The notes: a model not told the origin generated them from the letters alone. A DNA stretch of 64,000 nt from Pelomyxa schiedti (GCA_020536535.1 JAHLWZ010000605.1:21625-85624); one strand, 5' to 3'; shown: positions 38,916 through 57,741, counted from the first letter of the stretch. Made by a program: numbers and translations.

Positions 38916-41746
38916 TCAGGTTCTGGTGCAGGAGACGTTGAAGTACTCTTCAAACCATAACAGTATGTTGTGATTCTGAGGCCTGAGGCTCTTTTTGACG
39001 AAGAAGTTCTTGGCGTTTACAATGTCATCGGTTGTGATGCTAAATTTCTCCACCAACCACATTGCAACGTGCAAGTGTGAGTTGAAGCACGTTTTCCTGA
39101 ACACGCACCAGTCTTCTTCCGCGGCCCATATTCGGGATATGGAATACTTCTCACAAATAAACTGGGCAAGCCTAATGGTCATGGTTAGTGGTGCAGCTTG
39201 TGAATGTTATGTTAAATATTTTTGAACAGTATGATAATAGCACCAGAGCGGTTATAATAATAATTACGCGAGAGATACCTCAGGTGGCCATGCTCACAAC
39301 AAGTTCTGAAAGCACTATTCTGAGCCGGTTTTTTTGGCAGAATACCGGCACCAAATTTCTCAAAGAGCCAATGACAAGCATCAGCGCTCCCACATTGGCA
39401 ACAGGCGAGAAATGCTTTTGTTAAAGTAGCCGGCAAGGCAGCGGCCTGTTTGGAGTTCTTCTTGAGTGAATTCCAGTGCTCAATCAGCCAGGTAGCCAGC
39501 TTCAAGTTCTCCGATTTGCAGGCACAAATGAAAACAGTGGGGAAAAACTCTGGTGTTGGTGGGTATGTTGTTGCCTTCCAGTGTGTGATGTGGGGTGGCT
39601 CCTCCTCTCCTCGAGAAAGGTAAATTTCTTCTTGGGTAAACTCCACCTGTGATATCAGCCACTGCACACAGTCAAGAGCTCCTGTCTGGAGGAGTGTCCA
39701 AAGCCCCCGGCACAGAATATTGTGACTCAGTGGCATCGTTTTGACAGCATACTGCAATATGGGCAGATGTGGTAGAAGACCTATTTCCGAGTCTGGTGCC
39801 ACAGAAAAATGGTCCAGGAACCACTTGAATAACTCCACGTTGGTAATGGAGCGGCAGTATCCATAAACATAGAAATTCTGGTCCAGCTCAGTGTGTGAGC
39901 CAAGGGAAAACTTAGATGCAAGCCATTTGAGAATCGGAAGATTGCCGTGACTGTATGCCTCGTAAATACATTCCAGAACCCAATTGGAATCCGGAGGCAC
40001 AGTGAATGTTTCGCCAAGCCACACCATAACCTACGGTTTCATAGAGTTAAGGTCACTGTAATAGAAGTTGTGTATACCTCGGAGTGGTTTAATGAGCATG
40101 CATTGAACATGATTTCACTCACGTCGTCAGTGGGGGCTACAGGAACCTTTTGGCACAACCACTTTGCCATTTCCAGGTGTCCCTTTGAGCAGGCATTTTT
40201 AAAGCAGGAAGTAGTCACAGATTCATTTGAGAATGTAGCCATTAACCACTTGGCAATTTTTATATGTCCCCCAAGAGAGCATCCCAACAAAGCGGCAGTA
40301 TAACATTCAGGAGATGTGGAAAGGTGAAAAGTCTCCACTAGCCACTGAACTACATGAAAATGTCCCTCACTACAGCTATGGTACAGAGCGTAGTTTGGGG
40401 TATCCCGAGCAGTGGTAGTGGCATCATCCACAGTGAGGCTGAACTTACTCTGCAGCCATTGTGCCAATTCGAGATAGCCGCCTCGGCAGCTTTTCCGGAA
40501 GGCACTATTATCCGCACTCCTGATTTCATTTGGTGTTAGGGAAAGCTGGGTGGCCAGCCATTGAGCCGTGTGAAGGTGCCCACGGCCGCAGCATATGCGA
40601 AACGCCTTGTTATTAAGAGCACGCGCATCAGCAGAATTGAGGCCACAGGAATCAACTAACCATTCGCATACAGAAGTATCCCCACGGAAGCAGGAATGGA
40701 GAAAGAAATCTCTCCGCTCAGCAAGAACTAAAGGATGAATACCAATATGTGCCATGAGGTACTGCATCACATGAGTTTTTCCGTTTCTGTCACAACTGAG
40801 TTTTAGACGACTAACCAATCAGCGGAAACCTGATAGCTTCAGCAAGTGCCACAGCTTCAATAAAGGATTTATCCCAAGAGTCACATGGGGTGATGAGGTT
40901 AGTCGATGTCCACGACACCATCTTGAGATATCCAAGGGCTGAAAACACTGTAATAGCCATTTCTTCCCCACTTCCAAGCTGAGACATATCTCTACCTTTA
41001 AACGTGTACAGTTAGGACAGTAAAAATCGGCAATAGTTTTACCACTACTCCCCCTGCACTTCTACTCTACCACATTCATTCACTCACCTTCTCACAGCCC
41101 TATTTACTGGGGATTTTTTTTTTTGGACTTGCTCATTTAAAAAAATAGAGTGGTGAGTGTGGCGTCAAACGAGAACACATAACCTCACACCCCCTCCCAT
41201 AAAAAAGGAGATATGTATAAGTATATGCCTTACAATGCACCATCAATAAATCATACCAGAATACTTGCCGGCAGCATCACCGCTGCTCTGCTTGCCGACA
41301 GCATCGCCGCTGCTCTGGCACTGATGCTGCAAGACGTGCAGGAACACGGGCCTCCACGTGGCCAGGCACCGCGCCACGAGGCGAGAGCACAGCCCCGCCA
41401 GGGGGAACACCGCCTCGCCCGCCCGCCCCAGCACCACCACCTCCTCCCCCACGTCCTCCGCCCTGGGGGCGCCCGGGGGCGGGGGCGGCGGCCGCGGCCG
41501 CGGCAGCCCTGCCCCTCCCGCTCCCGCTCCCGCCCCGCTTCCGCCGCCCCTCGCCCCATTCGCGGGGACCCCTGTCGGCAGCGATGGAGCAGCATTGTCG
41601 TAGGCGTGGAGGAGGCGGCGGTACTCGAGGACGGTGAAACACTTGGGGCATGCGTGGGGCAGTACGATGCGCCACAGTATGTCACTGATCCATAATGCTC
41701 GTGCTGTCGTAGCTGCGCCCTTGGGGCTTGATGCTGTAGCCGACAT
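38916..41746 (-). CDS. Divergent ankyrin-like repeat protein
   Basis: About ten or more repeats of type AFRICCGRGHLHTAQWL, AFRKSCRGGYLELAQWL, ALYHSCSEGHFHVVQWL, CFKNACSKGHLEMAKWL; GC-rich first exon starting at ATG 41746. Confidence 0.75.
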
Positions 41747-42917: not shown

Positions 42918-52387
<9,470 letters not shown>

Positions 52388-52733
52388 CAAAAGAGAAAAA
52401 AAATCAAGTGCCCGGCACAACGATCGTCTTTTTGTGCTGGCGATGGACAACCCACCCCCAATTTAAAAGAAAAAAAAGGAAAAAAAGGAAAAACAGGAAA
52501 AAAATGCACGTTAGTTGAAGACTGTTTTCTAAGATCCAGCAGTTCCCCTCCCCAGAATTCCCTGTCCCTATTCACTGTGGCGTGTCTACACTTGTTCCCT
52601 CCTATTCCTTTCGTTGTGCTCCAACGACTCACCCATCTACCAATCGGACCAAAGATCAAACAAAGGCTGCAAGTTATTTTCATCGTAATCCGTTTGCACG
52701 AATACCGGAAGAAAACAATAAAACGAAAAACCA
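52388..52733. promoter_or_regulatory. Putative bidirectional promoter shared by TOR and the 7TM-INPP4 gene
   Basis: 346 nt between two divergent start codons. No specific element was identified; this is a positional inference only. Confidence 0.45.
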
Positions 52734-55700
52734 ATGGCACTGAACGCGAGCACGAGCACGGGCTCGGCGTCGTGGAGCTCGTCGTCATGGGACGGCAAGC
52801 TTATGGGAAACGGGGATATATGTAACGTAGTCACGATAGTCGTGGCCTCCATTATGGGCCTGGTTACGCTGTGGAGGCTGTTGTGGGTTCAATTAAGGGA
52901 TGGCGTGCGACCATTTGGCATCAGGAAAATTTTTCACTGTCTCCTTTTGGGCTTCTTTTTTGGTGAGGATTCTTTTCTTTTCCTCTTTCTTTTTCTTTCC
53001 TTCTGATCTTGGGCTATGACTAGCTAGAGGATCATGGGCAGCTGTAAAACTATCTCATGCACACGATGTGGTGTCCTTTTTTTTTGGAAAAGAGGCACAC
53101 TGTTTGTTCTTTGTCTCTTTTTTGACAGTTCTTCTCTTTTTGTACGGATTTTTCAAAAATCTCTTGCACAAAGTCATTTCCCCTTTTAGATTAAACAAAC
53201 TCGTGATGTTTACACCAAAATCTCGCCGAATCCTTACAGTTCTATTATGGATTTCTGGCATTGTTCCAGCTTTGTACGTCATTATTCTTGCAATAGTCTT
53301 TGCTGCATCACCTGATAACGATGCCACAGAAGGTTGGCCAATTCATTACGTCCATGAATACAAAGTTCTTGTTAATATAAATAAAGGGAATACTTTGTAT
53401 GAGAGCTCCATTTGCATTATAATGGTGAGTCCATACAGTTGTAAAACAAAAAAAATTTACTTTTCAAGGGATATGCCCTGTTATGCTCCATTGGATTTCT
53501 TGGAGTCACTGCATTCCTTCAAAGATCTCTTTTTTTACTGAAGAGGCGGGACCTCCTCTCAAGACTCAAGATAAAAAGTTTAATTGAGCTGGTTGGTTGC
53601 CAGATGTTCCTTTCTTCTCTTACAATTTCCTCCCAGTCACTTCTACTTCTATTTTGTTGTACTGGATTTCTCTTGCAGTTCTTAATGTTTTTATATCGGC
53701 CAGTGACGGGAAAATATGTCAATGAAGTCGTGTTTTATGTCTTTGCTTATTGGGTTCCAGAGGTGTGTGCAATTATAATAGAGCTTCCAGCAACAAAAAT
53801 TACAGTAGAACCAAACATTCAATAGTTCATTTCTCCAAGCCTGATGCTTCATATCATGAGGCATCCTGACCGGTACAAGAATAACCGAAGCTCTTTCTGG
53901 AGTCAAGAAGATGTGCTTAACTCTTCTGGTAGTGACCTTGAAACCGGTAGTCAGCTGAAGGAACTGCTACATATTCATAATTCTTTCCCACAGAAGGTTG
54001 TTTACCATTCACTGGAGCCTCTTCTCATTTTTATTCTCCCTTCAGGAAACTACCGTACTCCAGGGAACAATTCTTTCTGTACGGCTCCAGTTAAGTTGTG
54101 ACTGTGGTGCCATAATTGCACTAGACCAAGGAGCAGTCAGCTTGGCGACTGCCTCAAAACATGAATTAGATACTGATAACACCGAATATCAACCTGTCAC
54201 AGTAACTTTCCAAAAAAAAATAAAATAAATTCAAATCTCACTGTTTCAAGGCGAATGCCCCTGTGGAATTCTGTCGCACATTTTTAGTTTTATTCCCAAC
54301 CTTCACCATCACCGTCAAAGTTGCTCATCCTGGCTCAGAGCAAAATGAGGTATAAACTTTTTTTTTCGATCTTTTTCTTTTACCCTCAATAAGTTCAGTG
54401 CACTTTGCGAGATTCCCTGTACTTTTGACAGTATCGACAGCCAAATTAACATTTCAGAAGGAGAAACTAGTGGCTGGATTCAAATAACCAGCGGCGCATC
54501 CCTTAAGTTCAGAGGAGCTTCTGGGGATTGCTTCAAAACTTATTTGTATCGAGATACCAGTAACTCGGTAAGTTCGTGTTAATATGTACATATTAATCAC
54601 CACCAATAAGGCTGTACACATCTGGGAGGTATGCTTGCCCACTAGTATTATTCCGAACCCATATTATACAAGGAACTCAGAGAGAGCGTTCTTTCATTCA
54701 GTGTTCCCTACCAAATTATCTATGGGATTCTTCACGATCGGGAATCACAACTCAAGAAAATTCAAGTTTATAATAAGAGTGTTGATTCTGTCTTATGCAA
54801 CACTTGCAGGACAAATATCATCACCTCATTTCTGAGCAAAAGGATGTTGTCATTCCGGATGAGGATATGCTTACTGTAGCAGTTTATGGGTAACGATATC
54901 CACGCAGGCCACCTGCTCGTAATTACATTGTATAGAATGGAACAAGCAAAACAAACTGCTGATTGGGAGGCAAAAATGAAGGTTTTACTCAAAAATTTTG
55001 CAGGGCACGTAGATTCTTGTGGCCAAGCTCTTGCAATTTTCAAGCAGTACTGTCCCTGTTTCTCCCATTGATTTTATTAACTCCACACAAGAAATAAGAT
55101 TGATGAATACACCTTCAAGCCATCCTCACTCAAGTCAGATAAGAGATTCCAGTTTGTACCAATCAATTTGCACACACATCTCCTGTTAGTTACTGACATT
55201 GGGGATGCCGTCTATCCAACTGTAACCTTTGGTAGGATTTAGCATATATCCCAAAACTAAATCGCTCATAGGCGCCGCTGCGGCCCACACCTGTGGTATG
55301 AGTAAGGGATCAGGGGCACTGTCACAGAGGATTGTACAATTAACAGCCAAAACGGACCTCACACAGTCAGAAGAAATCCAATTGGATGCCTTACGCCTTG
55401 TCCTTTTACAGCGCCGAGATATTCTTCTGTGTCACATAGCATCAGCACTGGCAGAGGCAGCCTCTTCAGGTGTTGAAGCTGCATGGCGCAAAGGGAAAGA
55501 TGCCTGTTCTGACTACCTTTCTTTGCTGTGCTCATGCGGGTTACTGGTCGCGTTTGAAAGCCTTCTTAGCACTCGAGGTAGAGAAGCCTCAATGTTGTCG
55601 GATTTCGATTGTGCTGTCAACATGCTTGAAGGCTTTTTGGTAAGATTGACTTTATCACCAAAAGAAGTTGAAAATGGTTTAGTACCCTCTTGTATGCTAG

Positions 55701-56644
55701 TATTAACCTTCAACAGGAGTTGCACGAGAAGCGGTTTCAATACGTCAAGCTCATGGACACTGGATTCTTGAACTTCCATGTAATAAAACTTTACTGGATC
55801 TTGCCCCTTCAAGTCTTGATGCTTTCCCTGTTCACGGCTGTTTGTTCACCCAAGGTTTTTTTTTCTTTTTTCCCTTAAAGAGACTTTATCTCAGACACCT
55901 AAATCAGGCATTAATGAAGAGCAGTCCATGGCCAATACCATGGGTGACACCCAACTGCAAGAAACCATAAACTTATCAAGTCTTGATAAGTTGCGGTCTC
56001 ACTTTGAGCAGTATTGTAAATGGGTTACAGAAATAAGTGGAAAAGATGTTAAGAAGCTTGAAATACTTCAGGAAGACTTTCAGAGATTATCACATCGGAT
56101 TCACAATGTAGATAAGTGGGTAGTTTTAACTACTTTTTTTTTCTAGCCTAATTTTGTTCAACAGAGGTGGTAAAGACGTCATCATGTTAACTGGCGTTGC
56201 AGATTTCTGTCGTAGTATTGGAGGAGTCCGGTGTACATCATGCAAAAGCGCAAAAGACAGGTACCCACCTTGTAGTACATATTTTAGAGTTATTCTCTAA
56301 TACTCAAATAGGACGAGCATGGGGGTAACCTGGGAAAATGTACGCATTCTTACAAGATACCATGGCCTACCTCCTGACAAGGCACAATCAATGATGGATG
56401 CAATGAGGTTTAGAATTCACTCATTTTCGGTTCCACTTCTAATACTGGTATCAGAGAAGCTGGTGTTAGGCGTGTGAATGTGAAAAAGAACATTGGAGAG
56501 GACAAGTTTGCTTTCAATGCACTGCAAGCAAGGTATGCTGTGCCATTGTACAAAGAACTGCATTAACAAATAAATAGACTCCTACCAGAACAGTACAGAC
56601 CTCCCAGGTCAACACAAGCTGGCTTTGTAGGTGTAAAATCATAG
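52734..56644 (+). CDS. 7TM (THH1/TOM1/GPR137-like) domain fused to inositol polyphosphate 4-phosphatase (INPP4-type)
   Basis: Seven hydrophobic helices (RKIFHCLL, HCLFFVSFLTVLLFL, YWVPEFISPSLMLHIMR). In-frame GT-AG junctions (e.g. 53997-54045, 54202-54250) continue into ELRESVLSFSVPYQI, FKPSSLKSDKRFQFVPINLH, YPTVTFGAAAAH, catalytic CKSAKDRTSM (Cys at 56241), GVRRVNVKKNIG and LPEQYRPP; TAG ends at 56644. Confidence 0.85.
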
Positions 56645-56738: not shown

Positions 56739-57741
56739 ATGGACGAGACGACGAGAACCGATGAAGGGAGCAGGGAAGTGACGTCAACAGTGACAACGAC
56801 GGCGTCTGCGAGCAGCGCGGAAGTGGTGACAACGGCGGCAGTTGAAGTGCAGGCTCCCGAGCTGAGTGAGGGCGAGGCTACGTTGGGCTCGTTTGCTGCT
56901 GTGAATGTATTGTGGGACAACGTTTCGTTGGGAGTTGGTGCTCTGCTGCTTACTTCAAAGTGAGAACATCATTTGTTTGTTTTTTTGTTTTTCATATTTT
57001 CTTTTTCATTTGGATTGGTGCAGTGGTGGCATTCATGGCCTGCGTGTCTTCTATGTTTTATATGTTTTTGTTTTGTGCTCTTTCACTGAGCCATATTTGA
57101 AAGGATTTTCTTAAAAACCTTTAAAACATCCAATGTGTAATGTTATGAAGGCAGGCATATTGGTACACTCTAGGGGCAACTAGGAATTTTGATTACCATA
57201 ACATCAGCTTGTATGCTATATCGCGGGATCCCACCACGGGCTACCAGCCCTGCATTTATGCTCATGTAGATGACCCTGATTATTCTGATGGGTACCATGA
57301 AACGCGATTCATTCCTAGTGATCCTACCTTACGTATGATAATATTCCTTTTAGTTGGGACTCACCATAACAAGTTGAGCGCATGTTCCAAGCATTTTCTG
57401 ATGGGTCCTCAATGAACCCAGACCCACCTGGTGTGTGGTCTTATTTACACACAATTTGTTTTCAACACTCTGTCCAGATGACTCTGATGATGAAGGTAAT
57501 GCTTTTTTCAATGTGGATGAAGTTATGGAAGGTGCGAGACTTGATACTATGGCCAGTCACTTTGAGGTTATCCTTTTCCTTTCACAGTTACCCATTCTAC
57601 CCCTGATACAACTCCAAGACAATGGTAGTCACTGAGGAGACACCAGCCGACGAGGCTGAGGAAGAAGAAGAGGAAGAAATAGATGATGCTGACACCAACG
57701 ATACTGAAGAACACACACATGGCCGAAGTAGCTCCTCTTGA
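56739..57741 (+). CDS. CLNS1A: pICln / methylosome subunit (Voldacs domain)
   Basis: LGVGALLLTSK, FDYHNISLYAISRD, PCIYAHV, ETRFIPSD, MFQAFSDGSSMNPDP followed by acidic tracts. Confidence 0.8.

Follow-up and report, generated by a model that had tools for sequence, protein, structure and literature searches.

The window, i.e. the whole stretch of 64,000 nucleotides analyzed here, contains on its + strand a gene of 18 in-frame exons that extends from 52734 to 56644 and shows GT..AG at every intron according to frame translation and a splice-site check (Table 1). The gene begins with an ATG at 52734 and ends with a TAG at 56642-56644, its introns are 40-78 nt long, and with exon 2 counted from 53024 the coding sequence comprises 3063 nt, corresponding to a predicted protein of approximately 1020 aa. 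An in-frame chain of GT-AG junctions had already been traced in a first-pass annotation, and its start and stop positions were recovered here as given. The surrounding region has the appearance of eukaryotic DNA with approximately 40% G+C and very short introns. The gene is located head-to-head with a TOR gene; in the Pelomyxa contig described below, adjacency to TOR was looked for and not found.

Table 1. Features of the 7TM-INPP4 gene, in positions of the window.
Feature	Position	Strand	Content
Exon 1	52734..52962	+	Start ATG, Ser-rich N-tail, helix 1, first half of helix 2
NAS sequon	52743-52751	+	Exon 1, N-tail
Helix 1	52818-52886	+	Exon 1
Helix 2, first half	52929-52962	+	Exon 1
Exon 2 (revised start)	53024..53424	+	Remainder of helix 2 with conserved Arg, helices 3 and 4, half of helix 5
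Helix 3	53095-53154	+	Exon 2
Helix 4	53230-53307	+	Exon 2
Helix 5, first half	53395-53424	+	Exon 2
Exon 3	53469..53762	+	Remainder of helix 5, helix 6, half of helix 7
Helix 5, remainder	53469-53519	+	Exon 3
Helix 6	53619-53696	+	Exon 3
Helix 7, first half	53727-53762	+	Exon 3; ends WVPE
Exon 4	53826..53996	+	Second half of helix 7, then cytosolic linker (predicted)
Helix 7, second half	53826-53858	+	Exon 4; FISPSLMLHIM
Exons 5-7	54046-54201, 54251-54349, 54394-54567	+	C2-like region
Exons 8-11	54646-54765, 54810-54889, 54936-55046, 55092-55231	+	Helical middle part
Conserved motif KELRESVLSFSVP	54670-54708	+	Within exons 8-11
Conserved motif FVPINLH	55153-55173	+	Within exons 8-11
Exon 12	55272..55676	+	INPP4 core (GAAAAH ... 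FESLLSTRG)
Exons 13-15	55717-55854, 55908-56115, 56165-56260	+	INPP4 catalytic end
Exons 16-18	56312-56407, 56455-56532, 56578-56644	+	INPP4 catalytic end and TAG
CX5R motif CKSAKDRT	56241..56315	+	Arg codon interrupted by intron

The start of exon 2, which determines the number of membrane helices, is most likely at 53024 rather than at 53129. When the acceptor at 53128 was used, the preceding intron became an outlier of 166 nt and helices 2 and 3 merged, leaving six helices. In contrast, the acceptor at 53023 gives an intron of 61 nt and restores helix 3 together with the conserved Arg, for a total of seven helices. The reading frame in this region is open from 53020, and residues 120-230 of the Mastigella protein P0012 (see below) align to 53020-53442 in a tblastn search. 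In the relatives that align at this site, the Arg of helix 2 is found 10 residues past F(H/Q); the counterpart in the window gene is FHCLLLGFFFAR, and this F-x10-R spacing is satisfied with the acceptor at 53023 alone. Helix 3 of the window gene reads EAHCLFFVSFLTVLLFLYGFF and its Mastigella counterpart LAHCLWQTSFLMVLTYIF. The loops of the revised seven-helix region satisfy the positive-inside rule for an orientation with the N-terminus outside and the C-terminus inside, and since the loop charges indicate this topology, the phosphatase is predicted to be cytosolic. Exon 4 has in-phase alternative donors at 53913 and 54000, either of which would keep the fusion. Two further candidate features were dropped: a mini-exon encoding AVHIWE between exons 7 and 8, which would leave an intron of 17 nt, and a donor of exon 12 at 55640, which is in the wrong phase and is disfavored relative to the donor at 55677 by a loose end in the RNA data.

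Spliced contigs of the single-cell RNA run X1 contain the joints 55854/55908, 56115/56165, 56260/56312, 56407/56455 and 56532/56578 as modeled. The joint 56260/56312 is the one that divides the codon of the catalytic Arg, with CKSAKD encoded by 56241-56258, the Arg codon split after its first two letters (AG, then G) by the intron 56261-56311, and the Thr encoded by 56313-56315. In addition, the loose end AAAGAAGTTGAAAAT before 55716 fits a 40-nt intron (55677-55716) after exon 12, so that RNA support reaches the last six junctions of the gene (five spliced joints and the loose end). Since the X1 contigs show these joints, the gene is expressed and its catalytic end is spliced as read; the CKSAKDRT motif of the INPP4 domain noted earlier is intact. 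The X1 contigs cover the 3' kilobase only, with none over 52700-55700, where the joint between the 7TM and INPP4 parts is located, and runs X2-X4 yielded almost no pieces on this gene. Because the X1 RNA is confined to the 3' kilobase, the joints between exons 3, 4 and 5 rest on sequence logic and homology.

A full HMMER scan of the representative set with exon 12 as query identified 31 relatives, the best with 39% identity, and several of them combine an N-terminal multi-helix region with a CKSAKDR motif close to the C-terminus. The same layout as in the window gene was found in P0012 from Mastigella eilhardi, a complete ORF of 1097 aa on a single Trinity transcript, and in P0003 from Mastigamoeba balamuthi, a gene model of 955 aa. 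The relatives also include a Pelomyxa schiedti protein (P0005) and P0039 from Pythium oligandrum (Poli38472_012237), a protein of 1380 aa with PF06454 at 92-318 (E 3.7e-10) and CKSAKDR at 1296. The similarity extends to the membrane domain: residues 226-375 of P0012 align to 53472-53963 (tblastn), with a summed E of 1e-13 for the 7TM exons of the window, exon 2 scored 25 bits against the P0012 7TM region (phmmer), and exon 1 weakly matched the N-terminus of the Mastigamoeba fusion. On the Pelomyxa contig, the annotated model of 774 aa begins inside helix 6/7. Directly ahead of this model, in the same orientation, the DNA codes for helices 1-4 and 6-7 (E 4e-21 vs Mastigella), indicating that the annotated model is truncated and that the fusion is present there as well. 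A tree built on the INPP4 region, in which exon 12 alone represented the window, placed this exon with the Archamoebae fusions with support of 88-90; the backbone was poorly supported, and monophyly of all fusion proteins was not rejected (p-AU 0.14).

The C-terminal half is clearly related to the animal enzymes. Xenopus INPP4B matched exons 13-16 with an E of 5.8e-16 (tblastn), P0012 matched Lingula INPP4A with an E of 1e-39, and the motifs EELxES..F..P and FVPxNLH are common to the window gene and animal INPP4. The region encoded by exons 5-7 contains a TE(V/Y)..P.F motif that is also found in the C2 domain of animal INPP4. Pfam C2 did not match these exons when scanned singly, nor did it match the relatives. 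The P0003 counterpart of exons 5-7, modeled from an alignment that included the window exons, is a predicted beta sandwich (pLDDT 67), for which the top 50 structural matches were nearly all C2 domains (Z 6.5-9.2), the C2 domain of VSP among them. Since the region past helix 7, as judged from this relative, is probably C2-like, it appears that a whole INPP4, i.e. C2 and catalytic part, is attached to the membrane domain. Pfam searches with the window exons one by one gave nothing meaningful, and exon 12 found no match among PDB sequences. The evidence for the window gene was gathered at the level of its individual exons. For the membrane domain, a model of P0012:1-350 contained seven helices (pLDDT 74), and its best 50 matches among 48,161 chains were all GPCR-type seven-helix folds, almost all of them GPCRs, with Z 14.2-16.8 over 225-260 residues. 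As modeled on this relative, and with moderate confidence like the C2-like model, the seven-helix domain has a GPCR-like fold.

Taken from the sequence, the 7TM and INPP4 parts are encoded as one polypeptide with the layout of a GPCR-INPP, as the earlier annotation had proposed in joining them. The helix 7 motif W[LV]PE..P...MR, which is conserved across the fusion relatives, spans the joint of exons 3 and 4 and becomes complete only upon excision of the 63-nt intron 3, giving YWVPE followed across the joint by FISPSLMLHIMRH in the window gene. Because this motif straddles the two exons, it is impossible that exon 4 represents the start of a separate gene. An arrangement of two neighboring genes, with a 7TM-only gene ending through intron retention followed by a separate soluble INPP4 gene, would agree with the lack of X1 RNA over the upstream part and with the rule that INPP4s are soluble in animals. 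The 7TM-only gene would then end at 53823-53825 (retention of intron 3) or at 54099-54101 (retention of intron 4); that both introns lead to a stop when retained also speaks for their removal and hence for the fusion. Moreover, an in-frame ATG is absent from exons 5-8, where the conserved KELRES motif and the C2-like region are encoded, the first downstream Met being found in exon 9, while the nearest ATGs all fall within helix 7. Intergenic space is absent, and the single Mastigella transcript as well as several gene models carry the same fusion, making two genes extremely improbable. Assuming the single polypeptide, its INPP4 part might still be a catalytically silent scaffold, as an intact CX5R motif by itself is no proof of activity and P-Rex provides a precedent for an INPP4-like domain of the scaffold type. 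This appears quite unlikely, since CKSAKDRT(S)M and its flanking blocks closely match those of the active animal INPP4A/B, and the CX5R motif is retained in nearly all fusion relatives.

The membrane domain had been assigned to the TOM1/THH1/GPR137 type in the first-pass annotation. Part of this assignment stood: an amoebozoan 7TM profile matched the oomycete group that includes the PF06454-positive proteins P0039 and P0047 with an hhalign probability of 89% (score 48.5, P 2e-6, 88 columns; reversed and column-shuffled controls 8-19), and since PF06454 represents the THH1/TOM1/TOM3 domain, formerly DUF1084 (the name used in Table S3 of PMC5784254), the window 7TM probably belongs to the TOM1/THH1 type. 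The direct route failed, as PF06454 matched neither the window exons, scanned singly, nor, at E 10, the 7TM parts of nine relatives, Archamoebae included. These negative results would suit a GPCR-fold domain from a family other than THH1/TOM1/TOM3-GPR137, as would the generic GPCRs among the structural matches and the empty result of a word search that used only the Mastigella 7TM. In contrast, the hhalign score well above its controls argues for the TOM1/THH1 assignment, and a language-model search, which serves as a lead only, placed the THH1/TOM1 and GPR137_N clusters on top among the named ones (0.85-0.89; GPR137_N 0.87), so that another family is regarded as unlikely. Only three oomycete proteins were retrieved in a word search based on the Pythium THH1 domain, which is not enough to build a family profile, an Atlas shape search gave only unrelated bacterial rows, and an Atlas feature search with exon 2 gave no usable match. 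A related question is whether the seven-helix domain acts as a genuine receptor through which a ligand turns the phosphatase on or off, as considered possible in the first-pass annotation and in the hypothesis that van den Hoogen et al. put forward for the bigrams (PMC5784254). The GPCR-like fold modeled for the relative, the conserved polar residues within the membrane (the Arg of helix 2 and the WxPE of helix 7) and the precedents of the voltage-sensing phosphatase and RpkA (the latter in PMC5784254) are consistent with such a switch. However, no ligand is known for proteins of the TOM1/GPR137 type (PMC12716839), and the linker past helix 7 is poorly conserved, and we therefore rate ligand gating as possible, if rather doubtful.

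As a whole, the data are best explained by a membrane-embedded 7TM-C2-INPP4 protein of approximately 1020 aa that would function as a PI(3,4)P2 4-phosphatase, an explanation which we consider quite probable. It is in agreement with the membrane-embedded INPP4-type protein proposed earlier, as a single gene model encodes a polytopic protein with its CX5R domain on the predicted cytosolic side. Such a protein would expose a short, glycosylatable N-tail outside, followed by seven GPCR-like helices in the membrane and, on the cytosolic side and in this order, the C2-like domain, the helical middle part and the INPP4-type CX5R phosphatase. Most likely, PI(3,4)P2 would lose its 4-phosphate to yield PI3P, with the enzyme working in cis on the cytosolic leaflet of its own membrane. 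Recruitment from the cytosol would be replaced by the seven-helix part, which would set the compartment and may also have a regulatory role, while the C2-like domain might assist in docking the catalytic part to the bilayer. The compartment may, by analogy with proteins of the TOM1/GPR137 type, be endolysosomal or phagosomal. Substrate, activity, topology and compartment, like any control by a ligand, are what we infer for this protein. A more far-reaching scenario, in which the fusion arose once before the split of amoebozoans and stramenopiles and works as an endolysosomal sensor akin to GPR137, setting PI(3,4)P2/PI3P and thereby feeding into TORC1, is highly unlikely in our estimation; if true, its site of action would be the lysosome or macropinosome, and the head-to-head position of the TOR gene would reflect shared regulation.

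The GPCR-INPP bigrams were defined in 2018 by van den Hoogen et al. (PMC5784254), and the mention of such oomycete proteins in the first-pass annotation proved correct (Table S3 therein). Phytophthora infestans has seven GPCR-INPPs, annotated as inositol-3,4-bisphosphate 4-phosphatases (PMC5784254, Table S3), and in the GPCR-INPP block of Table S3a one row carries DUF1084. Outside the oomycetes, GPCR-INPPs were reported from the stramenopile alga Nannochloropsis alone, and they are uncharacterized, the function of none having been measured (PMC5784254). Entamoeba histolytica was reported to have no INPP4 (PMC6563779), and a survey of social-amoeba GPCRs does not mention phosphatase fusions. 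In the literature searched we found no described amoebozoan 7TM-INPP4 and, in line with the earlier statement, no characterized one. The window gene is therefore a GPCR-INPP in a new lineage and not a new kind of fusion, because the oomycete bigrams were catalogued in 2018 (PMC5784254). The presence of the 7TM-INPP4 layout in the window gene and in three Archamoebae genera, where it had been filed merely as 'inositol 4-phosphatase', widens the range of these proteins and again raises the question of an ancient versus a repeated origin of the fusion. Moreover, free-living amoebae offer non-pathogen systems in which direct 7TM control of a lipid phosphatase can be tested, and for phosphoinositide biology the predicted protein would represent a natural example of an INPP4 that is permanently tethered to the membrane.

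Like the window protein, the oomycete GPCR-INPPs (PITG_12266, PITG_02728, PITG_02812 and P0039) carry a 7TM domain at the N-terminus and, behind it, an INPP4-type phosphatase that contains CKSAKDR. However, they are longer (1380-1541 aa) and match PF06454 directly, in contrast to the window exons, and P0039 shares 28% identity with Mastigella P0012, the closest relative of the window protein. Within Amoebozoa, a 7TM receptor-like domain is likewise combined with a phosphoinositide enzyme in the GPCR-PIPKs, represented by Dictyostelium RpkA (PMC5784254; PMC10445921), although their 7TM is of the Dicty_CAR type and their enzyme is a kinase, whereas that of the window protein is of the phosphatase type. 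The closest relatives in both halves, with an identical layout, are the Archamoebae proteins P0012, P0003 and KAH3763058.1 (Pelomyxa schiedti); their identity to the window protein is only 30-40%, and they are annotated simply as inositol 4-phosphatases, the Pelomyxa model lacking the 7TM exons. The animal enzymes INPP4A and INPP4B contain the EELxES-type motif, FVPxNLH and CKSAKDRT(S)M, preceded by a C2 domain whose counterpart is predicted for the window protein, in the same order as the latter, but they lack a seven-helix domain at the N-terminus and reach the membrane by recruitment from the cytosol. Some animal INPP4s possess a single C-terminal hydrophobic stretch, whereas the window enzyme is predicted to be permanently embedded in the membrane. 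Ci-VSP consists of a four-helix voltage sensor and a PTEN-type CX5R lipid phosphatase with an additional C2 domain, and thus, like the window protein with its predicted C2-like domain, unites a membrane module, a CX5R lipid phosphatase and C2. TMEM55/PIP4P, a PI(4,5)P2 4-phosphatase of the CX5R type with two C-terminal helices, resembles the window protein in that a membrane-embedded module is joined to a CX5R lipid phosphatase.

At the orthologous Pelomyxa schiedti locus, the publicly available model KAH3763058.1, 774 aa in length, starts within helix 6/7 of the seven-helix (7TM) domain. Since exons encoding helices 1-4 and 6-7 are located directly upstream of it on the same strand, the deposited model is N-terminally truncated.

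Location of the features discussed
Feature	Position	Strand	Evidence
Two long ORFs with ankyrin repeats	window 39212-40818	minus	Ank_4 E 6e-16
TOR kinase gene	window 43983-44444 and 48675-49091	minus	Pfam PI3_PI4_kinase E 8e-15; mTOR_dom E 4e-8
Fusion gene	window 52734-56644	+
Next gene, start (MDETTRTDEG...)	window 56739-56963	+	Contigs from 4/4 RNA runs, depth higher
Upstream 7TM exons and start of KAH3763058.1	JAHLWZ010000417.1 9030-10100	same as model

The fusion gene and the TOR kinase gene upstream of it are head-to-head neighbours. This adjacency was not seen at the orthologous locus, because no gene called up to 10 kb away from it has a TOR-type Pfam match on record. Downstream, the next gene starts approximately 95 nt past the stop codon of the fusion gene, and the RNA contigs covering this start diverge from the genome sequence near 56960-56986 in a splice-site-like manner.

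Five proteins of 950-1085 aa from Logan/ENA metagenome assemblies (P0001, P0002 and P0032-P0034) form a group; they possess at least six N-terminal helices together with the middle part of INPP4, and the CX5R active-site motif is absent from all of them. Either these sequences are cut off at contig ends, or the fusion family has a phosphatase-dead branch to which they belong.

Unlike the fusion proteins, the INPP4 homologue of Thecamonas trahens (P0009, XP_013758572.1) carries, in place of the 7TM domain, an N-terminus with a weak FYVE-like match (E 6e-4, under the Pfam cut-off), which would offer an alternative route for anchoring INPP4 at PI3P membranes.
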